Shown one piece after another: positions 2,972 to 42,363 of a DNA stretch of 64,000 nucleotides. Under the pieces are notes generated by a model that saw only the letters and a list, made by a program, of their open reading frames with translations, ran no database searches and had not been told where the DNA came from. A program made the position numbers and the translations under genes. How positions within the stretch are numbered: the stretch's first letter is position 1; the number at the start of each line of letters is the position of its first letter. Source of the DNA: Cyanophora paradoxa CCMP329 (lineage: Eukaryota > Plantae > Glaucophyta); NCBI GenBank assembly GCA_004431415.1, contig QPMI01000483.1, positions 124,001-188,000 on the forward strand, in the 5' to 3' direction.

Positions 2972-3310
2972 AGTGTACATCCCACTCTTGCAGCCCGGCC
3001 GTGGACTTGCAGTTTAAATTCGTGTCCAAATGCGTCTCACATGCACAGAATTCAGACGACCCAGCTGCAGCTGTAGCCGCCCCAAGACGACCCAGCGCAG
3101 ACCCGCCCCCCTCTCCTTAGGGGGCCACGCAGGGCCCGGCCGGCCAGTTCGCTGGAGGGCTGGGCCCGCGGCCGCGGCGGCCGCAGTGTACATTCCCACA
3201 CTTGTAGCCCGGATCTGCGTTTTTTAGTACGTGTCCAAATGCGACCCAGCTGCCCCAAGCTGCGGTGCATTACCCCCTAAACAGGGCTGTGCAGGGCCTG
3301 GCTGTGGGCT
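2972..3310 (+). repeat. Dispersed repeat family A, copy 1 (core ~3112-3243 with degenerate partial units on both sides)
   Basis: CTCTCCTTAGGGGGCCACGCAGGGCCCGGCCGGCCAGTTCGCTGG...GTGTACATTCCCACACTTGTAGCCCGG...GTGTCCAAATGCG is shared with four other loci. Confidence 0.9.
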
Positions 3311-3334
3311 AAAGATTGCCCGAGGCGTTTGAGC

Positions 3335-4835
3335 TCAATTGTCATGGTAATATCGCTTACTAACTGACGATGCCGTAAATTTATCGTTGCTGGCGTAGCA
3401 TTTCTCGCAGTAATATGCCGGTTGGTCTGGCGCAACCCGATCTCCCCAGGAGACCCACCTGCAGATGTTACACCGAGAGGTTAAACAAATTAAATAATGT
3501 ATTGAGGACCTTGCGGGGTAGATATCACAGACTCGACACTTTTTCCTGCGGATCTTCGACTGGAATGTCAAGAATGGATATCTATCGGTCGTCTGGGGAT
3601 CAGTCTCCTCGACCATCCTGCGTGCTTGCGTGAATGCACGTAAATGAAAACAGTCCATCGAATGCACCTCACATCTGAAACAACCATGATGTGCTCACAG
3701 TCCCCTCGGTGACAGTACACTTGTGGAGCACCAATTCGGAGTGTTAGATCCAGCATCTTCGTTTCTTGCATGGATTTGACCACCATCGTCCCCTCGCTCC
3801 ATCCTCTCAGAGAACGTGCCCATGCCTCTAGCCTGGACGAGCTAACGTAAGATGTGATGCGACCAAAACAGCAATGAAGAAGAGTTCATTTCTAACCGTC
3901 CGTCATCATCTGGCTGCCTTGAAGGATCATGGATATAAAACACATGATCAATGAAGAAGAACGAAGCAGTTGACTCGCTGTTGCAGTCTTGAAAGTCCCG
4001 TAAACAATACACATAGTCTCGAAGCAAAGACAGAGATTGCGATCCCAGAATCCGGAACTCCTGAACGACAAGGATGAGCTGCATGCGCTCAAACCAGGTC
4101 GCCAGTAGCTCACCTGAGTCTTTGAGATGCGAGTAGGATTATAAAACTCCACTGTGACGATGACATCTCCTCTCGAGACTGCTTGCTTTCGTTGCTGTGC
4201 AGCAGATTCCAGAAATTGCAAGCGGTCCTCTCCACCAGGCACGAGGGTCATGAGGGCACGTTGAATTTCTGCAGCACTCTTGCAATGGCAATGCAGTCAG
4301 AGTAGGATATGAGACACACAACTCGATGCAGACCTGGTTGGAAGAGACGATGATGTTGTCCTCACGATTCGCTGGCTTTCTCATCGTCATGGCGCGCCTG
4401 AGTTCTCAATTAGGCGGCTCAGTCTCGTCTACGCGGAAGAGCGAGAGCACTGAATGGATTGGAGCTGCGATGAGTCAGAGCAATGATGGATTGCAACGAA
4501 ACGCGAGCGCGCACTGGAAGCGCATTCGTCGATGCATTGTACGCGTCTTCAATGCTGCAAGCGCGTTTATATTGCGTCGTATTTGTGGCACCGCGCGGAT
4601 CACCTGAACTCGCGCAGCTCAGAAGGTCTGGTGTGAAGCTCCTCATCCTGCGCTCGGAAGCGCGCCGCATCCTCCTGGAACTGGGCAATCCTGGCGCCCT
4701 GTGATCGGACATCGCGACTCGCTCGCGCTCCAACGCACCCCACGGCGGGCGACGCGAAGGGCGGCACAATCTGCGAGCGCGTCAGGGCGCGCACAAAATG
4801 CATCGCGGACATCACGGATGCACCTCCCAATCCAT
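3335..4835 (-). CDS. SNAPC3: snRNA-activating protein complex subunit 3 (SNAP50), multi-exon; start approximate
   Basis: EFRILGSQSLSLLRDYVYCLRD, SFFFIDHVFY, YCHRGDCEHIMVVSDVR, CRVCDIYPA...YYCEKCY zinc finger. Confidence 0.88.
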
Positions 4836-5055
4836 GGACGCTAATCGACGTCGTAGAACACGCGCGCAGGCGCCCCGGACGCGCCTCGTCCGGTACCGAC
4901 TGTGCGGTGATGCGTGAGCTCCAGGCTTGTCTTTTTGGGGGCCCCAGCTGCGTGCGCGGCGGTACTGGTACCGGCGCGCCGGCGCGCCAAGCGCCAACCC
5001 CCCGGCCCCCCCCCCTCTCCTCGATCAATTTCGCAATTCATTCGGGCTGATCACG

Positions 5056-5482
5056 AGAGATCCGTCTAGTTGTAGGTGTTCTGTCTGCAGCCTGTATGTT
5101 TCTCTCGAAGTGCAGATCCCTCCAACAGCGCGATCTGACCCCTATTCGAGCCCCCCGGCGCAGGCTGACTCCATGTCGGGCCCCCATGGCCCGTAGGGGT
5201 CCCGCCACAAGAGACGCGATGCCGCACCCTGCGGGCACATGTAGCTATAGCCAGCTAGAGTGTCCGTGGGGAGGCGCATTACTCTCCTTAGGGGGCCACG
5301 CAGGGCCCGGCCGGCCAGTTCGCTGGTGGGCTGGGCCCGCGGTCGCGGCGGACGCAGTGTACATCCCACACTTGTAGCCCGGACTCGTACGTTTTCCGTA
5401 CGTGCCCAAATGCTGTGTCCGCAGGGAGACCCCGGCTGGCATGGTGGGCTGGGCCCGCAGCAACAGCACCACAGTGTACATC
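5056..5482 (+). repeat. Composite repeat: module Y, short module Z, family A copy 2
   Basis: 5056-5125 matches 15585-15651 and 17325-17389; 5130-5412 matches 17660-18025 with deletions; a partial second A unit runs to 5482. Confidence 0.88.
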
Positions 5483-5518
5483 GAAGTGGTCCAGACTGCC
5501 CCTATATTGGAACACAAT

Positions 5519-7139
5519 TCACTGCTTGTTTGTGACCTGCAAGGGGGAAAAGCCGGTTTTAGCACCGCCAAGGAAGACCGCAAGAGGAGCACCTCAGCCA
5601 TGCTCCGGATGACAACCTCGCACTTCTCAATAAGGATTTTGATCGCCTCCTGGAAAAGGACATGAGGTGCCAGGGCTCCCGTCGACTCGATCGTGACTGG
5701 CAAGAGTTACTGGGTGCAGTGTTTTGAACATCAGAACGTGCGTACAGATAAAGTGACTCTTGAGGCGCTTGAGCTTGATTCGTTTTTGCCAATCTGGACT
5801 CCGAATGCACTCCCGGCAGAGGGTGCAGTTCCTAGGCCTCCTGACAACAGCTTTCTTACCCCCTTCTCAGCGAATGGGGTAAGCGAAGTGAAGACGAAGA
5901 AAACGACGAAAATCGTCGCAAGAATGACCTGCAAGATCCTCAATGTCGAAAACTTTCATGGGACAAGTAGCAACCAGCTGATCAGCTTCCTCCCCATCGA
6001 AAGAGTCTATAAGGTCGATCTCAGGCATCAATCTGCGGAGACGAACAAAGTCATTCACGTAGTCGCGCGTTAAAAAAGCCCTTTAGAAGAGCTCACCGGT
6101 AGGTTGCTGTTGCAACTGGAGACCACTTGGCATGCGTTTTCCCAATGCCCTTCACACAATGGCATTCCACCTCGATCTCCTACCAAACTTGGTTCAGAAG
6201 CAGCGGGGTGGGAATGCCGACAATAAGTTCGAACCTGCCCTGGCCTCAACTTCGCAATCAAGATGTCGTCGTGTATGGGCTTGATGGGGTTTGAAGCATA
6301 CGCTTCTGCTTGCTGCCCATGTGGGATCCATTCTAGGTCTTTCGACAAAACTAGATGCGAAGACTACATCGGATACGAATACAAATAAGCCAAACGGAGC
6401 GATACCTTTCGATTGGATAAGATTCTCATCATCATCTTTTCCTCCGACTGGCTGGCCAGGCTTGCGGGTGCACTTGGCCTGCAACCTAAAGACAATTGTA
6501 TTCTTTTCCGTGGCATCATCTTCCTCTGTAATCGAATGAGAGAGAAATCGAGTGCTCGAGTTGCGTAAAATAAAACTCACCCCCTTTCATCTCGAACTTC
6601 CTAGGGTCTGCCATGATGGGAATCAGCCCCAGCCGATGCGCCAAGATTTCGTCGGGAATGATTGAAGTGTTGTTCTGCATCCACACTTTCTCGATCGCCA
6701 TCGTTGGGATCTGTGCCAATGTTTGGAGGTGAGGTCGAAATGCGCACGCGTTGATTTACCTCCGAGAGCAGGATGCGCCGGATTGCATTTGCTATAGGCG
6801 CATCGATACCGCTTACGTCAATGACGGCGACTTCCCTGTCCCACGATACAACCTCGACCTTCAAGTTCTCCTGGAACGACTCGAGGGACCAGGTGTTGTC
6901 GATCCCCAAGGAGCTGAACGATCCCGAATAATCGAAGTTCCCGGTCTGATAAATACCCGTCAGCAGGCTCCGGGCACGCAAGGAGTTGATCGCGCTCACG
7001 TATACAGGCGCGTCGAAGTTCGCAGTGACGGCGCGCCGCTGCTCCTCGAGATCTGCAGAGCGAGCAACGCAATCAAACCTTTAGCTAAATGCAAGCTACG
7101 TGGCGCACGCTTCGGCAGCTGCGCCTTCGCCTTCTTCAT
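5519..7139 (-). CDS. RPC40: RNA polymerase I/III shared subunit AC40 (RPC40/POLR1C), multi-exon
   Basis: [20 protein letters not shown]|[52 protein letters not shown]; ATG 7139, TGA 5519. Confidence 0.95.
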
Positions 7140-7512
7140 CTTGATCGTCGCAAACCGGTCCTCCAGCGCTTACGCGCAGCTACCAACGCTTTCTTCGCGT
7201 CGAATGCAGCAGCACGATCGTCGATTCGCGCTTGAAAGCCACCTTGCGGTTAGCGCAAGCAGCGCAGTCAGCGCTTGCTAGGGGGTACGAGCAGCTAGGG
7301 CGGGGGGGACAAACGCGAGCCAGCGCTAGCGGGGTCCGGCAGAGGCGGGGCGTATACGAGCGGCTGATCGATAACCGAGAGCGCAGCGCTATTCTGCACC
7401 AGCTTCAGCGTAACCGTGCACTCCATCGATCGCCGCGCGCGGGTTGGACTCGGCTAGCTTAGCGCGAGCATTCGGATATCAAGGCGTATCAGTTTACAGC
7501 GAACTCCGCGCG

Positions 7513-9604
7513 ATGGGGCTCATTGAAACGGTGAGCGCAAGCGCTCGTGCGGGCAGTGATCCCGACTTTGCCTGGCGAAGAAGATCGCTCCGTAGCGCCG
7601 GGAGCGCACCGTCAAAGTCTAAATGCAGCCTGCTGGCAGGCCGCCGGCACCGGGTCCTTCGCGGACCTGGGGGTCTGCGCACCGCTTTGCGAAGCTTGTG
7701 AAAAGCTCGGTACGTGCACCGGCGCCGAGCTTGAAATTCATCTGACCGCTCGCGAAGGATTCAAGACCCCAACCAAGATCCAGATCGACTCGATTCCCTC
7801 TGCTCTTGCAGGTTGGATTTGACAGATTGCCTTCGATCTGGTCGGTATCGAGCGAGCCTCCAGGTCGCGACATCATCGGGCTTGCGCAAACTGGCTCCGG
7901 GAAAACAGCGGCATTTGCATTGCCAGTTCTGCAAAAGTTGCTTGACAAGCCCCAGCCGCTCTTTGCTGTGGTCCTTGCACCAACAAGGTGCTCTTCAATG
8001 CCAGGTTTCAAACACATCAAGTTACCAACACGTTTGCAGAGAGCTTGCGTTCCAAATAAGCGAACAGTTCGAAGCCCTCGGCTCGGGCATCGGCGTGAAG
8101 TGTGCTGTTGTAGTTGGGGGGATCGGTGAACGTGGCTGTCTTGTTCCGAAAGCATCTTCAACGAACTTACCAAACCATCAGATATGATGACGCAGGCCAT
8201 CACCTTAGCGAAGAAGCCTCATGTTGTTATCGCGACTCCTGGCCGCCTGGTTGATCATCTCGAGAACACGAAAGGCTTTTCACTAAGATCGATAAAGTTT
8301 CTGGTCTGCACATCCCAGCGGACTCATTGGCTCGAATTTTTTACTTTGTATCTTTTCAGATTATGGATGAGGCGGATCGTCTTCTTAACATGGATTTCGA
8401 GAAGGAGATCGACAAGATTCTGCAGGTGATCCCTCGCGAACGGCAAACATTCCTCTTCTCTGCAACCATGACTACAAAGGTTCAGTTGAATCATACAGCC
8501 AGGCGACATAATGGTTTTTACCTGTGGTTACCAGGTCCAAAAACTGCAGCGGGCATCACTCCGGAACCCAGTGAAGTGTGAGGTCTCTGCAAAGTGTGCT
8601 GCAACCCGCGCTTTGCACAAGCCAACTTTGCCTTACTCCGTGAATAGGTACTCGACCGTAGATACTCTCATCCAGCAATACCTTTTTATCCCCGCAAAGT
8701 ACAAGGACTGCTACCTCACCTACGTTCTTAATGAAATTGCTGGAAACACAACAATGGTGTTTACAGCAACGTGCCAAAACACACAGGTATAACCCTTTCT
8801 TGAATACGCCTTTAAATTGCTCACCGTCATGCAGAGAATCGCGATTTTGCTGAGGAACCTCGGCTTCTCAGCAATCGCCATCCACGGCCAACTAAGCCAG
8901 CCAAAACGGCTGAGTGCCTTGAACAAGTTCAAAGCAGGCCAACGCCAGATCTTGATTGGTATGCAGCCCGCCCAGTGTTTGGAATGACGTTGATCATAGT
9001 TGTCAGCTACCGATGTTGCATCGCGAGGGCTGGACATTCCTACAGTGGATGTTGTGATCAATCTTGATCAACCGAGCAATTCAAAAGACTACATCCACCG
9101 AGTTGGGCGCACAGCAAGAGCGGGGAGGTCTGGCCGTGCAATCTCTTTCGTGACACAGTGTGCAACTTTTGAAACCTTGCATGCGTTTTGCAGTTCAAAC
9201 TCCTCGCAGGTATGATGTTGAGACATTCCAGCGCATTGAAGATTTGATCGGGATCAAGATGACTCAGGTGCATTCAATTGTATTTCAACTTCACATTGTT
9301 GCTCACATCACACAGTATCCTGCAGAGGAGGCAAATGCACTTCTGCTTCTTGAGCGGGTTTCTGAAGCCCAGCGGATCGCATCCATGGTACAAGTTCCTC
9401 TAAATTCTAACCATTCAACTTCCTGAATTCGCCCAGGAATTGCGAGAAGCAGGCGAATCTGGCCGCGGGCACAAGCGGAAGACCCCTGATGCTGAGGCAG
9501 AGGACGAAGCCGAGGAGGGTCAGAGCAGACACAAGAAGAAAGGCGGTGGATTCAGTAAGAGGACCAAAGGCAACAAGTCGAGAGGCAAGCCAAAGAAGAG
9601 GTAG
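7513..9604 (+). CDS. DDX47: DEAD-box RNA helicase DDX47/Rrp3, multi-exon
   Basis: [12 protein letters not shown]|[51 protein letters not shown]. Confidence 0.93.
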
Positions 9605-9800
9605 ACTGCGGACCCAAACTAGCTCCAATATCGAAATCGAAGGCCTTCACATTAGCAGTCGCGTACACCTGGGCTGCCCGAGCATAGGCTGCCGGGAACG
9701 CTACAGCACACATGAGCGACTTGATCGAATTGATCACATCTACTGGATCACAAGAGAGTGCAAGAGTCAAGATCTAGATCCATGCGCCGAGCTGAGCTGG

Positions 9801-9994
9801 GCTCTTTTTACGCTACGGGCGCGCCGGACCTCCTACCTACAGCGCTTTAACTGTACCCGTGCTGTTTGGGTGAGAGCGTAACCCGCAGGGACTGGTGCCC
9901 TGATGGAGAAAAGGGGATCGGAGCCTAGCGCTAGCTGGCTACGAGCCGAGCAGGCGCTTCGCGTCCACGCCGGTTCCGTAGCGGATGAAGATGC
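9801..9994. repeat. Dispersed repeat family B, copy 1 (~195 bp)
   Basis: Near-identical to 26906-27101 and, inverted and truncated, to 60008-60157. Confidence 0.9.
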
Positions 9995-10235
9995 CTCAGT
10001 GCCTCAGTGCACATCACACACTTGCAGCCCTGACATTGCGATTTGAATTCATGTGGAAATGCTAATAGCTAGCCGGCTAGTCCACCCGTCCCTTTCGCCA
10101 AGCCCAACTTCAGGGTTGTGATTGAAGTCCAAGCCCAGACAGTGCGGGTCGAGGGGAAAGGGGCTTTCAAGTTTGATTTGAGAAGACTCTGATCTGAGGC
10201 TTTGATTCGAGGGACCGTTCTCATCCTTGCACTTA

Positions 10236-12004
10236 TTACTGGCCGTCGTCCTCAAACTCATCGCCATTGTCAAAGAGGTAGTTTGCGGCTGAGAATTCCG
10301 TGAACTGCATGTGACCAAAACAGAGAAAGGAGGGGCACCTAGGTTCTCATCCTTGTCACAGGCCAGGTAGGCTTGTGCAGCCCGGTCCCGGTCGAAGCCC
10401 ATCGACACGAGGCGATCGATTGCATCCTTGTCCTCCTGGGTTATCGCAATGTACTGGGGGCCACCCTCATCCTCACCACCACCACCAGCACCACCAAAGA
10501 GCTGGGCGAGGGCTGCCAACTGCTCCGGGGTCCTATCCACACAATACATAAGCAACATTGAAAATTCTTGGATTCGGATGAACTTCAGCAAGACTCTCAC
10601 TGACATTTGGGGAGCCGCCTGCTGGCCAGCTGCAGGAGCACCGCCAGCGCCAGGAGTTATCAGACGCAAGAAATCCGCCTGATTCTGCTGTGGATGTAAG
10701 CAAATTGCGGACAAAAATAACAAAAGGGGAAAAAGATGCCTGGTTGATGAGTTGCAACAGCTGAGGATTCGAGCGGCCGAGTTCTGCAAGGACACCAGGC
10801 AGCAACTGGGGATTTGCTTGAATGGCGTTAATCAGGGCGTTGAACTGCGGGATTTGGCGGAGCATCTCCACATTGACGCCAGCACCTGCAGGCAAGGTTT
10901 TCATTTGCCTGAAAAAGGAAAAAGAAATCGCAAAAAGATCACCAGGCGCCGCCGCAGCTCCCATAGCACCTGCGGTCGGCTGCGCTGGCGCCGCGTGTGC
11001 AGGTGGGTGAGGAGCCTCGTGCCGGACATCCTCCGGGATCCCCTGCGAACGATGGTTCCCGAAGGATAGATAGAGAAGGATATAGAACATCTCACGGTCA
11101 TCAGGTACTCGACAGCACGATCGGGGTTGTTGAAAGCCGCGCGAAGTGCCCGCACGACCTGGTCCCGCTCGAAACCCATCTCCATCAACTGGGCGACGCT
11201 CTGATTGTATGCCTGTCCAGTGACAAGGGCCGAAGCCGCTTGATCGGTCGGAGGCCTGCCTCGACGATTACATGCGCTTGACGGCGCGAGACGAGAAAAA
11301 GTCGCACCCAGCGGGAGCTGCAGGGGTGGCGGACTCCGCTGCGGCCGGGGTGGTAGCAGGGGGGGCCCTGGCGTCTGAGAGTCAAAGCATGCCCGTAGAA
11401 TGACCACGTCGAAGTGGTCATGCGTACACAGGGGAAGGCTGTGCAGGAGTCGGGGCCGGGGCCGGGGCCGACGCGGGAGCAGGTGCGGCCGGAGCGGGAG
11501 CAGCAGGTGCCGGGGGCGGAGCGGCAGCCGGCGCAGCAGCCGGTGCAGCCTGCGAATTAGTTCAATGAACGAATAACGCTGTGTACAACGCGGAATGGGC
11601 GTGCAGCTGACCGCCGCAGGCTTGACTTTCGAAATCATCTGAAAACAATGGTGAGTTGCGTACGCGCACTCAGAGCGCAGAAAGAACACGTACAATCACC
11701 AAGAAGTCACCCTCCTTGATGCTGGCTGCGGCTGTCGAGTGAGGAGGGAGATGGAAAGAGAGCAGCCGGGCGAACCACTCTCGAGGGTCTGGTCATCGGC
11801 GAGGACCTTTCCGGAGAAGATGAGCTTTTGCGATGACGCCGCATGCCCCTGCTCCTTCTCGACCTTCTCTTTGACAGCGAGAACCTGCGCACCCATTCCG
11901 ATGAGCCATGCGCAGCCGGCGGATCGCGAGCCGCGCACCGTGTCGGAAGGCTCCACCTGCACGTCAAACTGCTTGTTCTGCAGGGTCTTAAGCGTGATCT
12001 TCAT
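10236..12004 (-). CDS. RAD23: UV excision repair / ubiquitin receptor RAD23, multi-exon
   Basis: UBL ([13 protein letters not shown]...[10 protein letters not shown]), UBA1 ([26 protein letters not shown]), XPC-binding ([12 protein letters not shown]), UBA2 ([19 protein letters not shown]). Confidence 0.95.
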
Positions 12005-12210
12005 GGCTTCGGCGTATGCGTCTGCGCCGGCGGCTTGCATGAGCGACCGCCGACGACCGCTTCAGAAACGGCCGTGAGCGCTCTGGAGACGCACCGACAA
12101 ACGACTGCTTCTGACCCGTCTGACCGGTGGTCGACAGGGGGACTCGGCGCCGCGATGGCGCGGCGCAGATGGGTACCCTTGTCGACCTTCGTTCGCAACC
12201 GTTCGAAACG

Positions 12211-13319
12211 ATGTTCGTCGCCTCCCCTCCACTGCCGCGGGCGCGCCCGATGCCCGAAGAAGCCTTGGATAATCAGAACCGACTGCGCGCGTTGTGCCTA
12301 CGGACGCCGGCCGTTTCCCGCAGTGCGCCTCCCGCACGAGAACTGGCTGCTGCGCTGATGGGACCTTTCGCAGCGAGGCGGTCGAGTGCTTTCAAATTCA
12401 GCGGTATCAGCGCGCCGCACGCCCTCTGTTCTGCCGACCGGAGTGAGAATCCCCCTTTCGTCAGTGCGAGCCCCGCTGAGCTCGCCTCTCAGCTGCTGCG
12501 TACGCCAGTCGACCGATAGGCGCTTTTGATTCCGGAGTTGGTGGGCTATCAGTGCTCCGCGAGGTCCGGCGCGCGCTGCCGCACGAGGACTTGATCTACG
12601 TAGCCGACTCCGCATACTGCCCTTACGGGCTGAAGCCGTTGCCCGACATACAAGAACGCACACTTGCGGTCGCTCGGTATCTCGTGGATCTCGGTGCAAA
12701 GCTCGTCGTCGTCGCGTGCAACTCGGCCTGCGTTGCTGGCCTGGACGCCGTGCGGCAGGAGCTTCCGTCAATCCCGATCATAGGCGTAGAACCTGCAGTG
12801 AAGCCAGCCCAGGCAGCAACTCGCAATGGCCGGATTGGCGTGCTGGCGACCTCTCTCACACTTCAAGGCGCTCGCTTTGCGTCACTCGTGGACAGGTTTG
12901 CTTCGGATGTCGATGTTTTCATGCAGCCTGCGCCCGGGCTGGTCGACCTGGTCGAGGCGGGTGACTTGGACAGCAGTATGTGCAGGGGCCTTCTCAACGA
13001 ATATCTGAGACCATTACTTGAGAAGGACATCGATACTCTCATTCTCGGTTGCACACACTATCCTTTTCTGCGGGCAACCATTCAGGAAATTTGTGGAGAT
13101 GGAGTGACAATTCTCGACACTGGCGAGCCCGTTGCAAGGCACGTGGCCAGAACGCTGAAGCGTTCAAATCTTCAGTCTTCTTCATCTGCTCCCGGGCAAT
13201 TGCGTTTCTACACGAGTGGTGACCCAACATTGGTCCAGCCAGTACTGCGGAAGCTCTGGGACCAACAGGAGGCGCACAGTCTAGAAGTGCTGTTAGCAAA
13301 GATCGGTAGCAACGCTTGA
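12211..13319 (+). CDS. murI: Glutamate racemase with an N-terminal, probably plastid-targeting extension; one intron at 12443-12492
   Basis: Removing the 50-nt GT-AG intron joins MFVASPPLP... in frame to RPIGAFDSGVGGLSVL; CPYG, ACNSA and LGCTHYP (both catalytic Cys) are present. Confidence 0.92.
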
Positions 13320-13515
13320 TTCAGTGCGATGCAAAATTCGACTACATTTCCAGTTGACCAGGCCAGGGCTCCCCCCGCCTATCATAGTATAGCCCATCGT
13401 TATCGTAATGGGCGCGGATCGGTGCTGAGGCTGCCTCGCAGCGTGGCCGGGCGGCTGGGCAGCTCAGCGAAATCAATCAGGATCGACAATCCTCTCTCGC
13501 TGTGACTCGCTGTTT

Positions 13516-14964: not shown

Positions 14965-15651
14965 ACGCTACGCTCTAGGGTATCGATCGACCGCTCGTAT
15001 ACGCCCCAGGCCCCCGCTAGCGCTGGCTCGCGTTTGTCCCCCCCGCCCTAGCTGCTCGTACCCCCTAGCAAGTGCTGACGGCGCTGCTTGCGCTAACCGC
15101 AAGGTGGCTTTCAAGCGCGAATCGACGATCGTGCTGCTGCATTCGACGCGAAGAAAGCGTTGGTAGCTGGGTGTAAGCGCTGGAGGACCGGTTTGCGACG
15201 ATCAAGATGAAGAAGGCGAAGGCGCAGCTGCCGAAGCGTGCGCCACGTAGCTTGCATTTAGCTAAAGGTTTGATTGCGTTGCTCGCTCTGCAGATCTCGA
15301 GGAGCAGCGGCGCGCCGTCACTGCGAACTTCGACGCGCCTGCATACGTGAGCGCGATCAACTCCTTGCGTGCCCGGAGCCTGCTGACGGGAATTAATCAG
15401 ACCGCTGGGGCGCGCCTGGAACTTCGATTATTCGTGCATCTAGGCCCTGCATCTAGGTGCCGGGGAGGGCGCACTCCCTCCCTCAAGGGAGCCTTTCTGT
15501 GCCCGGCCAACCGAAGCCTCTCCGGCGGTGGATGGCGGGCTGGGCGCTCCTCGTGGTCCAATCCCACGAACTCGACCACAAAGAGAGATCCATCTTTGTA
15601 TGCGTTCTGTCTGCAGCCTGTATATGTTTCTCGGAGTGCAGATCCCTCCAA
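14965..15651 (+). pseudogene. Inverted duplicate of the RPC40/DDX47 promoter plus RPC40 exons 1-2 and introns, fused to repeat modules X-Y
   Basis: 14965-15404 is the reverse complement of ~6945-7390, with only a few substitutions over most of its length. Confidence 0.9.
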
Positions 15652-15658
15652 CAGAACA

Positions 15659-16600
15659 CTACTGTATATGAACATAGTTGTTGTTTATATTGGGCAATCT
15701 CCAAGCGGAATGGTCGAGAATGTGAAGAGGTATCTCTGTGCCCGCGGGTCAGGTCACGCGGGTGCCCTGGAGCGTCGATCGTAGTTGATTGTACTAAGGA
15801 AGCCAGGAGGCTAGAGACTAGCCTATCTATAAAGCTCACCTTGATTCCCGCAAGAGCCTTCACTTTCGTGTCAAAGACGTAAACAGCCAAGGTGCAGTTG
15901 GACTCGAGCTGCGAAAGAAATGTAAGGCATTTACAGCGATGCGTGCACGTGGTGCTCAGTGCACGGACACTCACAATTTTCTTCTGCAGCTGGGGGAGGG
16001 TTAAATGGACGAACGTGTCGTCAAAGCGCTGCTCGTAGAATGAAACGATCCGTGATCGTACAACTAATAAGCCAAAGCTTCAACAGCACAGTCGTTGTGA
16101 ATGAGGATGGGGAAATCCGAACCCTCTGGTGCTGCGGCAGCATCGAGAAAGGGCGCGTCCTGGGGGAAGGATTCACGAAGCTCCTCGCAGGCTGCAATCA
16201 AATATTCAGGAGGCGCGTCATGAATTCTCTCCATATATCTGAAGTTCGTGAGATGGCGAGAAGGAGAAGCGATCGCGCAGAACGCACTTTCTGCGAACCA
16301 GAAATGTCAGTTAAAGAGAGTACGGCCTTAAGGATTCTCACCTGATATACGCGATCGGCATTGAGAATATTCCATTGAGATCTGAAGGTGCACGATCAAT
16401 CTGGATCGAATCGCTTTGCGTGCCCAGCCTCTTCCAGGACCATGTTCCAGCTTGGATAATTTGTGTGGAGCTTTCGAACGCCCCTTTGAAGGTCTGCTCC
16501 TTCACGTACCTGGGTCGGTCGGCCACGCTAATGAGCCTCGCGGCAAAAAGCGGTCGGCCGGCCACTAGACTGGATTCCACTTTTGCACGTGCGTGCGTCA
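15659..16600 (-). CDS. Hypothetical multi-exon gene or gene remnant; start not identified
   Basis: Several canonical short GT-AG introns separate plausible exons (YMERIHDAPPEYLIAACEEL..., SFYEQRFDDTFVHLTLPQLQKK, LESNCTLAVYVFDTKVKALAGIK); no family recognised. Confidence 0.35.
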
Positions 16601-16968: not shown

Positions 16969-17728
16969 CTGCCGAAGCGTGCGCCACGTAGCTTGCATTT
17001 AGCTAAAGGTTTGATTGCGTTGCTCGCTCTGCAGATCTCGAGGAGCAGCGGCGCGCCGTCACTGCGAACTTCGACGCGCCTGCATACGTGAGCGCGATCA
17101 ACTCCTTGCGTGCCCGGAGCCTGCTGACGGGGATTAGTCAGACCGCCGGGGCGCGCCTGGAACTTCGATTATTCGTGCATCTAGGCCCTGCATCTAGGTG
17201 CCGGGGAGGGCGCACTCACTCCCTCAAGGGAGCCTTTCTGTGCCCGGCCGACCGAAGCCTCTCCGGCGGTGGATGGCGGGCTGGGCGCTCCTCGTGGTCC
17301 AATCCCACGAACTCGACCACAAAGAGAGATCCGTAGTAGGCGTTCTGTCTGCAGCCTGTATATGTTTCTCGAAGTGCAGATCCCTCCAAAATTAAAGAAC
17401 ACTACTGGGCACACGAGGCAGAGGGCACAAAGACGCGTCCTGGGGGAACGATTACGATCGTAGCTAGGACGTCTTAGCTTTGATCTGCGATTACGATTGG
17501 GGCGTCCTTGATCTGCGGTTACGATCGTAACTAGGACGTCCTGACCATCGATGGTTGCTGACCATCCTCCGCCAGCGCAGGCGATCGTCTGGGTGGGAGG
17601 CTCGTCGATCGAGTGCGCCCCCGGTTGCTTTCATTTGGATCTCAAGACCTTTCGATCTCGATCTGACCCCTTTTCGCGCCCCCCGGCACCCACCGCAGGC
17701 TTACTCCATGTCGGCCCCCCCCCCCCCC

Positions 17729-17762
<34 letters not shown>

Positions 17763-18027
17763 AGGGCCTGTAGGGGCTCCCGCCACCGCCCCGAGACGAC
17801 CCCTGCCGCCACAAGACGCGATGCAGCACCACGCCGTGCATGCGGGCACATGTAGCTATAGCCAGCTAGAGTGTCCGTGGGGAGGCGCATTACTCTCCTT
17901 AGGGGGCCACGCAGGGCCCGGCCGGCCAGTTCGCTGGTGGGCTGGGCCCGCGGCCACGGTGGCCGCAGTGTACATTCCCACACTTGTAGCCCGGACCTGC
18001 GTTTTGAGTACGTGTCCAAATGCGTAG
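16969..18027 (+). mobile_element. Longest composite element: RPC40 fragment, X, Y, minisatellite, Z, poly-C, family A; non-autonomous, class unknown
   Basis: 16969-17389 repeats 15228-15651; 17447-17541 repeats the 2.5-kb satellite; 17545-18027 is repeated inverted at 26130-26545. Confidence 0.7.
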
Positions 18028-18098
18028 TTGGTCCGGCATTCTGGACTCTGTGACGAGCCACGAGCACGTCGGCGGTCTGAATTCATGCCCAAATGCCC

Positions 18099-18617
18099 TC
18101 ACTCTTTCTGTATCTCTGCTTCCAAAGCAGCGCGAAATAACTGAACAGAGCCGGTGTCAGCGAAACTGACGCGTGCTCTGCAGCAAAGGCCTTACCGAAA
18201 GGCCTTCCACTTTACCCTTGGTTCGTTGATTGCTTTCAACGCATCGAGCAATGAGATCACGAGTGAATTGATTCGGGTTACGACCATCATCGACATAGCT
18301 GAGAGAGCGCATTGGCCAGAAGGATTTTCAGGAAGTCAGTTTCTCACCCGAGCACTTGGACAGGTATCTGCAGAGGTATCCTGTGCGACAGCTGCTGCAG
18401 TTTCTCGTACTGGCCGATGAGCTCGTGTCTGCACACCCTCTTTCAGTATGCGAAGGCGCTCTCGCGCGCGCGCTCACATCTGCTTCAGAAGCAGGGGCTG
18501 GCGCTCGGGGGAGAACTCCTCGACCACGGCCGCAATCCTCCCAAGCACATCGACCGTCGAGAGCAGGCGCGCCTCGGCGTCAAGTTCAGGGGTGGCGGGC
18601 GGCATGCGCTCCGCCAT
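18099..18617 (-). CDS. MED10: Mediator subunit MED10, multi-exon (not in the ORF track); 3' end uncertain
   Basis: Manual splice: MAERMPP...LGRIAAVVEEF...IPVQVLG|YVDDGRNPNQFTRDLIARCVESNQRTKGKVEGLS|LFRAALEAEIQKE. Confidence 0.85.
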
Positions 18618-18837
18618 CGCCGCCGCGGTGGTGTGCGCTCGCTTGACGGCACGCCAACCCCGGCGACCCCACGCGACCGACGAGAAGCTCCCGAGCGATG
18701 CTGCAATTGAAGAGCGGCCGATGTGCAGGACCCCCGCTCGCCCCGGGGCTGTTTAATTTGATGGGGAACCGGAACTTTGCGAAAGCTTGAGGGCAAGAAT
18801 TCGTATACCGGGGCTCTCGGACCGCTCTCCCGGTAGA

Positions 18838-20171
18838 ATGAGCGCCGGGCAGGTCCCGGGCAGGAAAGAGACGCCAGGCGATGTCACGGTGGCTATCGTG
18901 GGTGCGCTAGGCACGCCCCCCGACTCAGGCGTTCGCTGACATGGTCGCAGGTGTCGGCCGCCTCGGGCAGCTCATTGCTGGTGAGCTCGCGCGTCTAGGA
19001 TTCAAGATACTGCTGTACGATCACACGGAGCATGGAAGGCAACGCGCCGTCACCCTGATTCAGGTTTGCTAGGGCCGAAGACCGCTTCAGGTAGGAGGCT
19101 CATGTGAGCGCGCAGGCTGGCCTGGCTGAATGGACTATGCGTGGTTTGTTACCGCAATCGGACGCGGAAAACGCTCTCAAGAGACTGCGCGTTGTCGGCA
19201 CACTCCAGGAGGCCGCGCAGGCGCACCTCGTCGTCGAGGCCATTGTTGAGGACGTGAAGGTCAAGCAGCGCGTATTCTGGTACGCACTGCTACTGCATGT
19301 TTGCGCAAACAGCGCGCCGACCGGGCGCAGGGAGCTCGACGTCCACGCGCCTCCATCCACATTGCTAGCGACGTCGACGATTACCCTGGACGTGAATGAG
19401 ATTTTCAACCCCGATCCAAGAAATCTTGGGCAGGCGGCACTCCCCGGGGGTATTCGCAACTCCCGCATGATCGGCATGAGATTCTTGCACCCTGTGTACT
19501 TTATCCCAAATGTGGAACTGACTGTGGCGTCTTGCACATCCCGTGAGCCATTCTCCTCTCCCCATCACCATCGACCTGACCGCGGCTGCAGAGTCATCTC
19601 TGGAGAGGGCCCGCCAGATCCTCCGGCTTGCAAACAAGGAGCCTTTCGAATTTGTGTACGGTCAAGGGATGCGCAAGCGGCTCGATCTCATCGAGATGCA
19701 GAACCACTTTCGAGGCGTGAGATGTGTATCACTCAATTGTTTATTTGCTTGTCAATGAAGCCACGTGCAGATCAGAGGGAAAAAGTCCGGACGACCAGCA
19801 TCAACCAAGGGTTGCCCCCTCCTACTATTCCTGACCAGCCCCAATACCAGTACTCTGGGCATCCCTTGGATCCCGATGGTGGCACTCCCGACACGAAGTG
19901 CAAGTACTCTGTACTAATATCGCGAGCAGTTCTTGTGGGGATGGTCCCAGCAGCACCGGCCCAGACATCAGGGGGCGCCACAAGGTCCACTCAGGCGGTG
20001 GGTGACGAGGAAGGGGAGTGCTCGATTTGCTGCGCTCGCCCAAAGAATGCGGTTTTTGGACCATGCGGACACAAAGCATGTTACGAGTGCAGCTGGGAAA
20101 TCATGGCTCGTCACAGAGCTTGTCCAGAATGCCGGACCCCAATCGAGCAAGTGCTTCGCCTTTTCCAGTGA
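18838..20171 (+). CDS. 3-hydroxyacyl-CoA dehydrogenase-type NAD-binding domain fused to a C-terminal C3HC4 RING finger
   Basis: VAIVG|VGRLG Rossmann motif, VVEAIVEDVKVK, GMRFLHP...VE; C-terminal CSIC...PCGH..CYEC...CPECR..IEQVLRLFQ. Confidence 0.85.
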
Positions 20172-20248
20172 GATTTGCCAATGCGACTACATTTTCAATA
20201 TGTGTCGAAAGCAAAACAGTCGGGCTTTGATATCAGGCTGGGGTGGCT

Positions 20249-20395
20249 GGAGGCGCATTACTCTCCTCAGGGGGCCACGCAGGGCCTAGCCAGCCAGTTC
20301 GCTGGTGGGCTGGGCCCGCGGCCACGGTGGCCGCAGTGTACATTCCCACACTTGTAGCCCGGACCTGCGTTTTGAGTACGTGTCCAAATGCGTAG
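20249..20395 (+). repeat. Dispersed repeat family A, copy 4
   Basis: Near-identical to 17881-18027. Confidence 0.92.
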
Positions 20396-20495
20396 GGTCA
20401 TAGGGCTGCCACAAAACAGTGCTACTTTCAACAGCATCAAAATCCAGGTTTGAGACAGGGCAATAAATTGATCGTAATCTAACTAGTGTGCAAAA

Positions 20496-21603
20496 TCAAA
20501 GAAAGCGCGGGAGTTTGCTTGCAATTGGTTCTGTTTCTCCATGGTCCCGCAGATCAGGGGATCGCTTCAGACTTGATGCACTAAGTCCAGGAACAGACGG
20601 CTGAGCTGGGGAGTCAGAAATGTTTTGGCTTGAGGGCAGAGCGCTCACTTCATTGTGTAGCATTTCGTTGTTAAGAGCATGTTCGCAGCCTACATCAAGA
20701 CTGTGGTCCGGATCCTCCAGGCCAGTCACTGTTCCCAGAGAGCCGCTGTCTTTTGGGTGGGTTGCGAATTGTTCCGAGTCTGATGTTGACGAGAGAGAAA
20801 GGACAGAAGAGCTGTCACTTTCCTCTCCAAGTGCTCCGGTGCCTTCGCTGCCATGTGAAGCAGGATTCAAGAAAGCATCAAGCCTCTCTTTTGCCTCCGT
20901 GCACAGGTCCTCAATGCACTTGTCCATATGCAGCTTGAACGTGTTTCTCGACGTCCGATGCCAAAAAGCTCTCCAGATAGCCATGAGCTCGTCAAGTCCA
21001 ATCCACAACCTGCCAGAGAAATCTTGTCGAGACTGGCTTTGAGAAATGATTGCACAATTCACCTGTATCGCCTCCACTTCTTTTCTAGTACTTGGCGGAC
21101 GTTCAGGGGCTCGCTCGGCACAAGCAAAAGATTTAGCTGAGTGAGAGTAGACATCAACCTCCGCTCCTGTAGCGGGCGAAGATCTCAGAAAAGAAAAAGA
21201 AGAAATTAGCTCAAAAAGCACACCAGATCGAAAAGGAAGGGGCTGCCGGTGATAAGGACGACTCGAGCACCTGCACTAGGCGCATTGGAGCTAGGAGCCA
21301 GCGCGGCTTCGCTCTCCTCTGCCCCTGGCCGCGACTGCGGCTCCCGGAGCTGGTGTAGCTTCGCCTCGAGCTGCGGCACGAGAGTTAACCGCGAGCTGAC
21401 TAAAGGATGTGAGCTGGAATGGCAATGCGCACTGCGGGAAAATCAATGGCGAAGTGAGCGCTCGGATCGTCTTCGCTGAGGTGGTCGTCGAGGCAGATGA
21501 CTGGTGCATCATAGGCCGCACTCAGGCAGGCCACTACTGCTTCTTTCTGCTCAGATTCAGGGCCGGCGATGCCCACAAGCACGGATGGCGCGCCCATGGT
21601 CAT
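20496..21603 (-). CDS. Hypothetical protein with a degenerate uridine/NR-kinase-like P-loop N-terminus and Ser-rich tail; start approximate
   Basis: LVGIAGPESEQKE...VICLDDH and VVLITGSPFLFD echo the GIAGxSGSGKT / xxxDDF / IIVEG pattern; long terminal ORF 20496-21221. Confidence 0.5.
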
Positions 21604-21970
21604 CTTAGGGGGTACGCGTACGAGCTCTGCTGCCCGCAGCTGCAGGAGGCTGCGCATGCGCGCGGCCTCCGATCCCGCAACCGAGCGCGCGACCCGCGGC
21701 GGCCGATCCACCGGTGCTGCGCTCTATAGCTAGGGCATCGCATCTAGATTTAGCCTAGTAGGTGACGGGGAGGTCGACCTCTCTTGAGCGAGGGGCAAGC
21801 CAACCGGCTCCGTGAAGAGGGCTGGGACCACCGGACCACACTTTGGGACTCTCTATGTATCCCTAATTATATATAAGTGCAATGAGAGGCAGCATGCAGG
21901 CCTGCAGCGGGCCGGGGTCTCGAGTCACGTGAAATCATGCATGGTTTGGCGCCAGCGCCTCCCACACGAT

Positions 21971-24197
21971 CTAGCGGGATGTTGCGGGTACGGGATACTT
22001 CTTCTCGAGCTCCATAAGCTTCTTGACTGCAGCTTCAGTTTCAGCGAAGAAATACATGACATGCACAAGTTGGTGGCAGCTTACCGACATCTGACATGCT
22101 CGGCCGGTTGCGAGGGTCAGGAGCCCAGCACGACTGCAATGCCCACTTATACCGCATGACAGAAATCAGTGACAGAAATTGTGCACCTGTATCAAGCTCG
22201 AGAGCCCTGAATCAACATTATCGGGCATCTGAGGGCGGAAGCCCTCGATCACGGCATTCTTCAGAGTGTCATACGAAGTGCACCACTGGAGCAACCACAC
22301 ATTAAACACAGACAAATGATAATTTACTGAAACGCTATTTACCTCGATGAAGGGCAGATCGGAGCTGACCATCTCCCACATGCAAATCCCGAAGGCATAC
22401 ACGTCAGTTTTCTCGTCATATGCCTTACCCTTAAACACCTGGAAGTGACGACGTCAAATGACATTGTGCATCAGTATTTTTCACTGCTAATGAGATCAAA
22501 CGCACCTCCGGAGCCATGTAAACAGGTGTGCCGACCTGCTCCTGGAGCTGGGAAGCATCTGGCTTGACACAAGCCAGCCCGAAGTCGGCAACCTGAATAG
22601 GATGTCTCTACCACGAGCGAAAGAGCAGAGGCTAAGATGGAGCAAACCTTCGCATTACCGAACTCGTCCACAAGAATGTTCATGAGCTTCATGTCCCGAT
22701 GAACAATCTTGGGCTTGGACAGGTGCAGGTAGTTGAGGCCTTTGGCGACCTTCGAGACTGTAAACGGCTAGATGCCAGCAATGAACACATGATTGCTTGC
22801 CTGCGAGCAAGCCTTGATAACGGTTGGAGTGGGCAAACGCTTGGAGCCTCCATTGGGGTGCACAAGGTCATGCATGGAACCACCGTCCATGAACTCCGTC
22901 ACTGATGCAAGGTTGAAGTTCGGAGAAGAACAATGAAAATAAACTGAGCACACCAATTGCGAGATGGGGCTCGATTGTCGAGGCGCCCTGATTTCAACTC
23001 TCAGGACAGGGTCGAAGCAGGCAGGTTTCGAGAAGCGCACGAGATAAAGAAGAATGTTCGGATGCCTGTTCATTTAATTAGCACTGCGGCTCGCACGACA
23101 TCGACACAGCATACCTCAACTTGCCAAGAATGGCAATTTCGGCACGGAAATCTTGCAGGAGTGAGCCCTGCAGACTCTCGGATTTGAGCTTCTTGACTGC
23201 GACAGTAAATAAGAGGTGATCCGACAACACTAGGGGACAAACTCACTCGCAACCGCTGCGCATTTGTCATCAGTAAACAGTAGCTATACGGACATAAACT
23301 GACAGCAAAAACGAACTTGTGCCACGCCAGTTCCCACGGTAGACAATCCCGTATGACCCTTCACCGAGCTTGCTTCCCAGATGAAGCTCTTCGTTGGGAA
23401 TTTCCTGATTATCCGGTCAACTATCGGGGCAAAAGAAAGAGAAGAAGGTCCAAAGATAGTATTCAAAAAGGCGCGTATCGATGACGCCAAACGCACCCAC
23501 TCATACTGGGGCCTGCAAAAAAAGAATCACTCATCAGAGAAGACGGGAGAAGGTAAGCAGGAATTCCGGCCCAAAAGCCCGAAGCAACGAAAAAAACTAC
23601 CGCACTTTCCGGGGGATGTCGCGAGCTTCGTGACAAGCTTGTCCATGTTCCACTTGAGCGCGCTCACGCCCCTGGTATGGGTTACACACGCTCAGTCACG
23701 CGCGTGAGGGAAAAATTGCACCAGATGAACTCGTCGAACGTGATGCGGCCTAGGGACGTTAGCGAAGTCAGGCGCGTACGTGTGGTACTGCCTACCAGAT
23801 CGGTTGGCATCCATCTTGGAGTAAATGCGGTTGATCTGCTCATTTTTTTAGGCTCGAGCTTCTCGTCTGCGTGCGTGTCGCATTCCTCGCACCTCGGGGC
23901 CGCTGATGCGGGGGAACATCTGCTTCAGGACCTCTCCCAGCTCGAGGGGGTCAAGGTAACCCGAGTTGTCCGAGTCCGCCGCGTGGAAAGCCTTCATCGC
24001 GGCGATCTTCTCATCGTCGGAGAGCTCGGCAAACGGGACCTGAGCAGATCGCGCTCAGATCTCGACCTCGCTCACCGCGAAACGAGCGACTGAAACTACG
24101 GAAAAGCATGCACCGTGGCCTTCTTCGACTCGAAAAGGGACTTCTGCGTCTGGTCCCCGCACAGGTTCACGACGAGCCGGACGAACGGCGTGCACAT
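21971..24197 (-). CDS. Tyrosine-kinase-like (Raf/MLK-type) kinase with an N-terminal EF-hand pair, multi-exon
   Basis: EF loops DSDNSGYLDPLE and DANRSG|RITFDE; EIPNEELHLGSKLGEGHTG, RHPNILLYL, VTEFMDGGS, HRDMKLMNILV, DFG, GTPVYMAPE, DVYAFGICMWEM. Confidence 0.9.
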
Positions 24198-24435
24198 TGT
24201 TCCGTCTGGCTGAACTAGCTGCAAACCCGTACGAGCCCTGGACGAGTTAACAGCTGCAACGCAGACTCGGCTCGATCAAGGGGGTACACACAAATTTGTC
24301 CTTGCTAAATCGGTCAAATTTGTCTTCAAACGCACCAGGAAGCGAGCGAAAGCGAGCAGCTGCGCAGCGAGCGGCAAGGAGTCAACAGCGCAGCGGAAAC
24401 TCTCGGATTCAAGTCGGGGGCCGCCGCCGGCAGCA

Positions 24436-26092
24436 ATGGTGTGTGCGCCCGCTGGCGCATGTGTCTGGCGCATGTGCGAGGGCCGTAGCGAGCTAAGCGA
24501 GCTGTTCTCGAGCTATAGCTAAGAGTGCCACATCGCACAGGCCGAGGAGGATCGATATGCCTTCATCGTGGAATACTACGACGACATAGCACAGATGGTA
24601 ACCATGGCTGTCTCTCCTGTCGTCTTGAGGGCGCAGAAGCTGACTTTGCCTATCAGGTGCGGCGGTACCAACTGCTATACTACGCGGCGGACGCGACGCT
24701 GGAGATGGTTCGCTTTTTAACCCTGCAAGTCTTGCACGTGCGCCGCTCACGTCGAAGCAAACTTGCAGTACGATCTTAAGCAACGGCGCACCTTTTTGAA
24801 GCGCTGCGAGTATCCTTCCGTGCGCGCGTCGGACCTGCACCTGGGCTCCACCATCACAGTCTATTCTCGACAACTGAAGATTGTCGAGTACGGCGATGAG
24901 TTCACAAAGAAGAAGCTAGAAAACAGGCGGGAGAGGTTCGCGATGTGTAGGCAAGCCACCCTCTGGGGCTGACATCCCCTTCAGGACGTTGGCAATGATC
25001 AAGCCAGATGCGGTGCAGCATGCGGGAAAGATTTTGGACGCCATATTTGCTGCGGGCCTGAAGGTTGCGAACCTGAAGATGTTCCAACTCTCAATAGGCG
25101 ATGCCCAGGAATTCTACACAATCCACAGAGACAAGCCTTTCTATCAGTGCGCCTCCTTGACTGCGTAAGAAACAATATCGAAGTCCGTGACCTTATGCTT
25201 TCGTATCTGTTCAGGAACCTTGTGGGTTTCATGACGAGCGGCCCAGTTGTCGCAATTGAGATCGTTGGGTCCAATGTTGTCCAGAAGTGGCGCCAGATGA
25301 TTGGACCAACTTCGTCTTCCAAGGCTCGTGCAGAGGCGCCTCAGTCGCTTCGTGGGCAGCTCGGCTCAGATGACACTAAGAACGCCGTGCATGGGTCTGA
25401 CTCGGCAGAGAACGCTGAGAAGGTGTGCTGCTGCACTCTGTGAGAACTGAGAAGTGAACTTCTGAAATTTATGCGCAGGAATTGAACTTCTTCTTTGCTG
25501 GGCCACGAGTAAAGCGGACTACTGCCCGCTTTGAAAATTGCACGCTGGCGCTGATCAAACCACATTCCCTGACTGAAGGTCTGCAGGCCAATTTGCAGGG
25601 TTCCGTATCTCCAGGGATCTGGGATCTGACAACCTACTGCAGGGCTAGCTGGAAAGATTCTGGACGGCCTGTTCTCCAGTGGGCTCAAGGTCACTGCATT
25701 GGAACAGTTCCACTTGAACAAAGCAGATGCTGCCGAGTTCTTTGAGGTCTACAAGGGGGTTGTGCCAGAATTTTCAGTGCGCTCTTTGACTGGCAAAATG
25801 ATTGCTTGGGAAGACACTGATATTCCGACAGAACATTGTAGATGAGGCATGCACAGGCCCCCTCATCGCTGTGGAGCTTTGCGGTGGAGCAGCAGCAGGG
25901 GATGCAGTCAGGCAACTGCGTGGGGTCGTCGGCCCACGAGAGCCTGAGCTTGCGAAGGCGCTTCGGCCAGACACTCTGCGTGCGCGCTATGGGCGAGACA
26001 AGGTCCGAAATGCTATCCACTGCACGGATCTCCCCGAGGATGGAGTACTTGAAGTCGAGTACTTCTGGTCCGTCCTTCTTAGCGCAAAATGA
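24436..26092 (+). CDS. NME7: Nucleoside diphosphate kinase 7 (DM10 plus two NDK domains), multi-exon
   Basis: M|AEEDRYAFIVEYYD, YDLKQRRTFLKRC, TLAMIKPDA, NAVHGSDS, TLALIKPH, NAIHCTDLPEDGVLEVEYF. Confidence 0.95.
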
Positions 26093-26129
26093 ACTTGTGA
26101 ATGATGAACCATTGAGTGATGTTTGCTTG

Positions 26130-26545
26130 ACGCATTTGGACATGTACTTAAAAACGCAGGTCCGGGCTACAAGTGTGGGAATGTACACTGCGGCCGCCGC
26201 GGCCGCGGGCCCAGCCCTCCAGCGAACTGGCCGGCCGGGCCCTGCGTGGCCCCCTAAGGAGAGTAATGCGCCTCCCCACGGACACTCTAGCTGGCTATAG
26301 CTACATGTGCCCGCATGCACGGGGTGGTGCTGCATCGCGTCTTGTGGCGGGAGGGGTCGTCTCGGCGCGGTGGCGGGAGCCCCTACGGGCCCTGGGGGGC
26401 CCGACATGGAGTCAGCCTGCGCCGGGTCAGATCGTAATCGAAAGGTCTTGAGATCCAAACCAAAGCAAACGGGGGCGCGCGCACTCGATCGACGAGCCTC
26501 CCGCCCAGACGAGCGCCTGCGCGGGCGGAGGATGGTCAGCAACCA
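26130..26545 (-). repeat. Family A plus module Z, copy 5 (inverted)
   Basis: Reverse complement of 17552-18025 with small indels. Confidence 0.92.

Positions 26546-39393: not shown

Positions 39394-42363
<2,970 letters not shown>

Follow-up and report, generated by a model that had tools for sequence, protein, structure and literature searches.

The DNA considered here is a stretch of 64,000 nucleotides (nt) from the glaucophyte Cyanophora paradoxa CCMP329 (contig QPMI01000483.1, positions 124,001 to 188,000), in the following simply called the window. Behind the stop codons of several of its genes, among them SNAPC3, MED10 and a gene with an NDK domain, lie copies of a short repeat, family A, which is the subject of this analysis. 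An initial annotation had described five such copies, each with a constant end facing a nearby stop codon. Family A was traced by repeat finding and alignment, and a profile made from its copies was searched against the entire 64 kb. This search yielded seven copies and three older fragments, so that the count of five had to be raised, while the orientation of the five was as described in every case. Between 32 and 64 kb, where the window is GC-rich, the profile detected no copies. The constant 13-mer GTGTCCAAATGCG marks six sites in total: four exact ones on the + strand, ending at 3034, 3243, 18024 and 20392, one with a single mismatch on the - strand (26131-26143), and one with two mismatches on the + strand (5402-5414). 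The copies absent from the initial annotation are the short c0, with its constant end at 3034, and c7.

The copies share the constant end ...CCAAATGCG and are shortened to a varying degree at the opposite end, with lengths between 62 and 474 nt. Two of them, c3 and c5, are full length and start at the same first base in the alignment (TGGTTGCTGACC); a complete element measures approximately 420-475 nt. The variable truncation of the far end reported earlier is therefore borne out by five shortened copies against two full-length ones. Young copies are 97-98% identical to one another. The palindrome TGTACA, previously attributed to the element as such, is present in six of the seven copies, the exception being the diverged c7 at 10001. 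A variant end (GAATTCATG...AAATGC) is common to c0, c7 and the possible remnant behind MED10, and by this sequence feature these three look like members of an older subfamily. Coordinates of the copies, of their internal features and of the neighbouring genes are collected in Table 1.

Table 1. Family A copies, internal features of the element and neighbouring genes in the window.
Feature	Position	Strand	Remarks
c0, short, older subfamily	2908-3035	+	E 7e-15 (profile); preceded by the tandem array 2558-2860
c1, 5'-truncated	3069-3243 (secure part 3100-3243)	+	direct duplication at flanks
Weak older A fragment	3264-3303		profile search
c2, 5'-truncated	5107-5413	+	left side fused to family B fragment (5055-5128)
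Older degenerate A fragment between c2 and RPC40 end	5422-5481	+	E 3e-5
c7, diverged, older subfamily, 62 nt	10001-10062	+	E 1e-7; end shares positions with the stop codon (10049-10051) of a UBA-domain open reading frame on the - strand
c3, full length (473-474 nt)	17552-18025	+	antisense to MED10; 97% identical to c5 over 249 nt
Hairpin/palindrome GCGGCCRCGGYGGCCGC	17950-17966	+	inside the structured 3' region
Minimal 3' tail, common to long and short/deleted forms	17978-18024	+	contig joints and copy alignment
Possible older copy-end remnant (CATGCCCAAATGCC)	18074-18097	+	1 nt past the MED10 stop; E 2.9, weak; resembles the ends of c7 and c0
c4, 5'-truncated, ~145 nt	20241-20393	+	between the convergent RING gene (+) and the open reading frame ending at 20496 (-)
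c5, full length, inverted	26545-26130	-	constant end 38 nt past the stop of the + strand NDK-domain gene
SNAPC3	last open reading frame ends 3335	-	Pfam PF12251
RPC40	putative stop 5519	-	Pfam; human RPAC1 match
UBA-domain gene	open reading frame stop 10049-10051	-	Pfam
MED10	stop 18099-18101	-	Pfam PF09748 and RNA splice 18140/18196
RING/3HCDH gene	stop 20169-20171	+	Pfam
NDK-domain gene	stop 26090-26092	+	Pfam

Within c3 a poly-C tract is expanded to 50 nt (17713-17762), where other copies have 5-7 C. Homopolymer runs of C or G, 27-50 nt long, also occur at 33780-33810, 41413-41447 and 58737-58776; the run at 17713 is the expanded C6 tract inside this transposon copy. Tandem arrays of 45-67-nt units containing CGATTACGATC (2558-2860 and 17441-17543, + strand) lie directly 5' of c0 and c3, and a motif related to these arrays is present inside family A itself (~17640-17670) as well as at 27170-27190. 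The arrays may be the variable-number repeat head of a composite element.

Important insight into the element boundaries came from c4. Here, a 97-nt block of the 3' untranslated region (UTR) of the open reading frame (ORF) ending at 20496 (20394-20490, - strand) is 100% identical to 27252-27348 in a paralogous gene, and no family A copy adjoins this paralogous 3' UTR. Because identity with the A-less UTR resumes at 20394, the constant end of c4 is fixed at 20392 or 20393, depending on where the T at 20393 is assigned, and c4 itself is an addition to that UTR. The same comparison suggests a small target deletion at the c4 site. A 9-nt repeat around c4 (CAAAACAGT) was considered as a target duplication and ruled out, as it does not abut the element ends. 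In the case of c1, the flanks carry a direct duplication of 10-12 bp, (CG)ACCCAGCTGC, at 3057-3068 and 3242-3253. Sequence past the constant end is unrelated between copies, and the flanking bases vary.

The 5' flank of c5 has a different origin. This stretch (26546-26625, - strand) is a copy (87.5%) of 22290-22369, which takes in the end of an exon and the whole of a spliced 57-nt intron; the gene concerned lies 4 kb away. The copied piece, ~80-88 nt long, lies in intergenic DNA and is joined to family A through 8 nt of shared sequence, a junction that fits template switching or microhomology-mediated joining.

Evidence from outside the window was drawn from contigs of public sequencing runs, two of DNA and two of RNA. 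Over the last 150-200 nt of family A, summed contig depth reached 14,754 against a single-copy depth of 65.9 in one DNA run, and the corresponding values over family A were 7,250 and 37.4 in the other; the ratio is ~200x in both. Many contigs match the window as far as 18023/18024 or 20390-20392, beyond which they run on for more than 255 nt in unrelated sequence. As they leave the window exactly at the constant end, this sharp end is a property of the whole family. Contig joints ending at 17978 and 20346 revealed, in addition, forms with only the last ~47 nt in common, and this module is kept in c0 and c7. In nine 30-nt consensus flanks beyond the constant end of other genomic and RNA copies, the bases were counted as A 120, C 70, T 45 and G 35. 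A-rich flanks of this kind would agree with nicking of a T-rich strand, with the restriction that a majority consensus of mixed flanks overstates base bias. A skew of bases on the gene strand, considered as proof that A-rich flanks equal antisense placement, was dropped, since it is small and inconsistent within the window.

Transcription enters the element. The RNA contig of MED10, spliced at 18140/18196, extends to 17998 and thus 27 nt into c3, and that of the RING gene extends to 20322, 73 nt into c4. Both contigs end inside the copies because assemblies break at repeats. Overall, family A is strongly over-represented in RNA contigs. Scans of genome contigs and viral contigs for further family A copies gave none, and the two matches from an exact 19-mer scan of metagenome contigs were discarded as chance after alignment.

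Next to its sharp terminus, the element has a region with a marked predicted fold. On the element's own strand, the last 150 nt form a multi-branch structure of -80.5 kcal/mol, a value that none of 200 shuffles reached (z = -3.4), against z = -1.9 for the gene-sense strand of the same region. Among the pairs predicted for the element's own strand several are G-U, which would be mismatched on the gene-sense strand. At one predicted pair, 17956/17960 (fold pair 82-86), c3 and c4 have A-U, and c1, c5 and the majority of genomic copies have G-C. For c2, a second compensatory change in this hairpin was considered and rejected, since c2 has one wobble and one broken pair there. A short, weak stem of 4-6 bp (GGAC...GTCC) ends 8 nt before the terminus of family A.

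Family A encodes no recognisable protein. Pfam detected no domain in its open frames, a word-indexed protein search found no relatives of the antisense frame, and an exhaustive search of representative proteins gave one marginal match for the sense frame (E 6e-4). In the search for a known class, no Rfam family reached the gathering score in the whole window, and Rfam on c3 with E up to 5 returned a chance miRNA match only. The Rfam scans also gave no hammerhead ribozyme, the mark of Penelope-like elements and retrozymes, and ARAGORN found no tRNA-like sequence in family A. Publications searched for Cyanophora in combination with polyadenylation or transposon classes yielded no account of the element. 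Miniature inverted-repeat or other terminal-inverted-repeat DNA transposons were rejected as a class: an alignment of the first 50 nt with the reverse complement of the last 50 nt was no better than shuffles, and no target duplication of fixed length was found among the copies. A Helitron was likewise rejected, as the termini are TGGTTG... and ...AAATGCG instead of 5' TC and 3' CTRR, and the insertion dinucleotide is not consistent, in contrast to insertion between A and T; a Helitron would also have its hairpin ~11 nt before the 3' end.

The combination of a constant 3' end and variable 5' truncation, as expected of a non-LTR retroposon (LTR, long terminal repeat), is found among the seven copies. 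High copy number, unrelated flanks, the sharp end, the truncation, one duplication and the absence of a protein uphold the earlier proposal of a non-autonomous mobile element. We therefore lean, with some reservation, towards family A being a non-coding, non-autonomous, SINE-like non-LTR retroposon (SINE, short interspersed element) without poly(A), probably mobilised by a long interspersed element (LINE). As such, it is an undescribed element, but one of a conventional type.

Several observations speak against reading family A as such a retroposon. A target duplication adjoining recognised boundaries is present in one of seven copies only and was found in none of the other six. Copies end ...CCAAATGCG, with neither a poly(A) nor a short tandem-repeat tail, and the Rfam and ARAGORN scans showed no tRNA, 7SL or 5S head, which a SINE in the strict sense would have. 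A poly(A) or repeat tail is not required of stringent-type elements. No LINE with the same tail is present inside the 64-kb window, and Pfam found neither reverse transcriptase nor endonuclease in the long ORFs at 31-62 kb. The intron within the c5 flank fits templated DNA repair as well as it fits template switching on pre-mRNA. The copy number, in the order of hundreds, is not exact, as contig depth does not equal the number of copies, and the predicted switch at 17956/17960, a single compensatory event among five closely related sequences, is suggestive only.

Under the retroposon reading, the copies could have arisen as follows. The RNA of the element's own strand would have a 3' region with a strong fold as well as a ~50-nt tail, and this tail would be recognised in trans by the reverse transcriptase of a LINE. 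Reverse transcription, primed at a target nick, would begin at the constant end, and its frequent early stop would leave the far end variable; an occasional template switch or microhomology joining would give junctions of the c5 type. Surviving copies would gather in tail-to-tail spacers, which are very short and free of promoters, and hence come to lie within ~100 nt of a stop. The antisense bias could come from a strand preference of the endonuclease at gene ends or from selection removing sense copies. As a by-product, the 3' UTRs of host genes would read into the reverse complement of family A.

The neighbouring genes were examined as well. The stops given in the initial annotation for SNAPC3 (3335), MED10 (~18099) and the NDK-domain gene (26092) agree with Pfam and the RNA splice, the MED10 stop having been read by eye across the RNA-supported splice. 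The ORF ending at 20496, previously called a P-loop gene, is transcribed according to the RNA contigs, but Pfam assigns it neither a P-loop nor any other family. The RPC40 frame (5245-5703, - strand) matches human RPAC1 to 9 residues before its end and then stays open for ~120 more codons, through the old fragment and c2. For the protein to end, there would have to be either a stop codon somewhere from ~5519 to 5561 or an intron; alternatively, the annotated C-terminus could run into transposon sequence. For the RING/3HCDH ORF, a large protein collection gave one match, the EukProt entry tig00020848_g14552.t1, whose name has the format of the gene names in the 2019 C. paradoxa assembly (PMC6704402) and of which three segments map to exons at 18838-19544 with 100%, 95% and 88% identity. 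Introns seen in RNA contigs are GT..AG and 49-67 nt long.

The distance from the constant end to the stop is 38 nt at the NDK-domain gene, 74 nt at MED10, 91 nt at SNAPC3, 103 nt at the ORF ending at 20496 and ~105-150 nt at RPC40. The c7 copy overlaps the stop of the UBA-domain ORF. Five of the six spacers that bear family A are tail-to-tail; the remaining one is tandem, with c2 between the end of RPC40 and the start of SNAPC3. On the far side of the spacers lie a kinase, a DEAD-box helicase and an Asp/Glu racemase (all +). In five spacers the nearer gene is clear, and there the copy or copies are antisense to it and lie 0 to ~150 nt past its stop, the upper value being that of c2 and the others staying within 110 nt. 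In the sixth, c4 is ambiguous: the RING stop is 77 nt away from its truncated end, and 102-103 nt separate its constant end from the other stop, in line with the caveat already made about the copy behind the convergent RING gene. Without their repeats, these spacers measure merely tens to a few hundred nt. For the C. paradoxa genome as a whole (~100 Mb, 67.6% GC, on average 9.2 short introns per gene), intergenic distances average 770 bp, and overlaps occur between many of the 3' UTRs (PMC6704402).

A constant end pointing towards a stop is the same as an antisense insertion downstream of a gene, so the original observation splits into proximity and orientation. Because spacers are very short and mostly tail-to-tail, nearly any surviving insertion sits close behind a stop. 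Proximity to stops thus carries little information and is mostly forced by compactness. Orientation alone is informative, but weakly so: all five unambiguous spacers are antisense (one-sided p ~0.03), four of these five generated the hypothesis, and with n=5-6 the count is partly post hoc. The c7 copy and the older fragments, which were outside the original sample, obey the same antisense rule. At SNAPC3, RPC40 and MED10 young copies stand beside older fragments. By position, this stacking hints at repeated use of the same sites, or these may just be the sole tolerated sites.

Taken together, these positions could be read as active targeting, i.e. family A or its partner machinery being directed to the first ~100 nt behind RNA polymerase II (Pol II) stops, in a fixed antisense orientation, as a safe harbour. 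As cues, complexes of 3'-end processing or termination, R-loops, or some feature in the sequence at gene ends could serve. Up to nine pieces in the five unambiguous spacers, all antisense and 0 to ~150 nt from the nearest stop, are in favour of this, as are the compliance of pieces new to the sample, the young copies beside old ones at three genes, suggesting repeated hits, and the fact that the single + strand gene, that with the NDK domain, has the single inverted copy. The A-rich flanks past the constant end (A 120 against T 45) point the same way, but this bias is inflated by the majority consensus. Short, often tail-to-tail spacers predict stop proximity anyway, the sample is small and in part post hoc, the stop closer to c4 belongs to the gene to which this copy is sense (77 against 102-103 nt), and c2 also lies within the promoter-side spacer of SNAPC3. 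On this evidence we regard active targeting as rather unlikely.

Two further explanations address the constant end itself. Family A could be a domesticated 3'-end cassette, with copies kept because the reverse complement of the constant end supplies signals for polyadenylation, termination or the UTR, such as the UGUA within TGTACA. Host transcripts do enter family A within 38-110 nt of the stop, so that most such 3' UTRs must contain it; the ~50-60 nt beside the constant end are kept in every copy, the shortest included, and TGTACA is kept in six of seven. Reverse transcription that starts at the constant end, however, predicts its retention anyway. The better fold is on the element's own strand, opposite to the one transcribed from the genes, where G-U pairs turn into mismatches; the RING transcript reads c4 in sense as well, and an AATAAA for the RING gene lies past c4, at 20463-20468. 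The mobile terminator cassette of the initial annotation is not supported by this evidence, and a domesticated function of this kind appears very improbable. A DNA-level element, either rolling-circle (Helitron- or Helentron-like) or a single-strand transposon of another kind with a constant end set by its 3' hairpin, would account for the lack of target duplications in most copies, for the GC-rich hairpins of the 3' region with the GGAC...GTCC stem 8 nt before the terminus, and for the copied gene fragment at the 5' junction of c5. The 5' end of family A is nevertheless TGG and not TC, its 3' end ATGCG and not CTRR, and the flanking bases are not consistently A...T or T...T. Truncation opposite the constant end is a signature of reverse transcription and not of the rolling circle, and the 10-12 bp duplication at c1 also argues against a DNA-level element, to which we assign a very low probability.

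Among the three lineages with primary plastids are the glaucophytes, whose mobile elements are, to our knowledge, almost undescribed. Family A is a concrete, young and abundant member of the "unknown repeats" that make up 11.5% in the 2019 C. paradoxa genome (PMC6704402). It suggests that many C. paradoxa 3' UTRs are partly transposon-built, which bears on gene models, on overlapping 3' UTRs and on small-RNA or antisense effects. A 2025 methylome reported that C. paradoxa repeats are generally methylated and that expressed genes gain CpG methylation towards their ends, a pattern called unreported in other eukaryotes (PMC12344493). Repeats packed behind stops and in 3' UTRs may be a source of this gene-end profile. 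If antisense, stop-proximal placement were found genome-wide, and beyond the effect of short spacers, family A would be a rare retroelement addressed to Pol II gene ends. The fuller proposal, in which family A and its LINE partner are directed repeatedly and in antisense to the first ~100 nt behind Pol II stops, and methylation of family A causes the rise at gene ends, is one we consider unlikely; if true, it would describe a retroelement that uses transcription termination as an address.

Other repeats were also noted in the window. Family B, ~700 nt long and with a constant right end of its own (...CCCTCCAACAGAACACTACTG), occurs at 14966-15664 (+), 16969-17407 (+), 5055-5128 (+) and 6925-7388 (-), with one 5'-truncated copy, and lies directly 5' of the family A copies c2 and c3. 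Its + strand folds well (z = -2.6) and its GC-rich core is weakly A-like. Family D12, ~210 nt long, 96% alike between copies and with the constant right end ...GGATGAAGATGC, is found at 9788-9994 (+) and 26894-27101 (+), with partial inverted copies at 60016-60158; both full copies (2/2) are, as in family A, downstream of and antisense to a - strand gene. Two adjacent - strand genes, including the one behind c4, share blocks that are 98-100% identical (20394-20490 = 27252-27348; 20965-21089 = 27536-27660; 21085-21340 = 28616-28870). These blocks are separated by unrelated sequence, and one of them is the whole 97-nt 3' UTR, a mosaic that suggests recent gene conversion or patchy duplication. 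Finally, composition changes sharply at ~32000: the first 32 kb are 51-60% GC, gene-dense and repeat-rich, and the region from 32 to 60 kb is 63-77% GC and has numerous long ORFs that are driven by GC, hardly any Pfam match and no copy of family A.

In comparison with known systems, family A resembles Helitrons and Helentrons in its constant 3' end with nearby hairpins, in the mostly absent duplication and in the gene fragment at one junction, but differs from them in its termini, insertion dinucleotides and truncation pattern and in the one 10-12 bp duplication. An antisense bias is known for L1 and other retroelements within mammalian and plant genes. As in that case, selection against sense signals or a strand preference of the nick would suffice for family A, with no need of targeting; unlike it, the bias in family A concerns the tiny spacers and 3' UTRs of a 100-Mb protist genome and was measured on few copies. 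SIDER1 and SIDER2 of Leishmania are short degenerate retroposons concentrated in 3' UTRs, mainly sense-oriented and acting on mRNA stability or translation. Family A shares with them a size of ~0.5 kb, non-autonomy, a gene-dense genome and, for the genes of this window, the presence in 3' UTRs of unrelated genes and in their transcripts; it is antisense to the nearest gene, unlike SIDERs, and no sequence kinship would be expected. SINEs that depend on stringent LINEs have a structured 3' tail that is not poly(A), as in the UnaSINE1/UnaL2 pair and in the SINEs dependent on CR1, L2 or RTE. In contrast to these, family A has no detected tRNA, 7SL or 5S head and no terminal short-repeat tail, its duplication is seen in one copy, and its LINE partner is inferred. 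Like them, it combines a constant 3' end and 5' truncation with a short common tail behind different bodies, a 3' region that folds on its own strand, a lack of coding capacity and a copy number in the hundreds.

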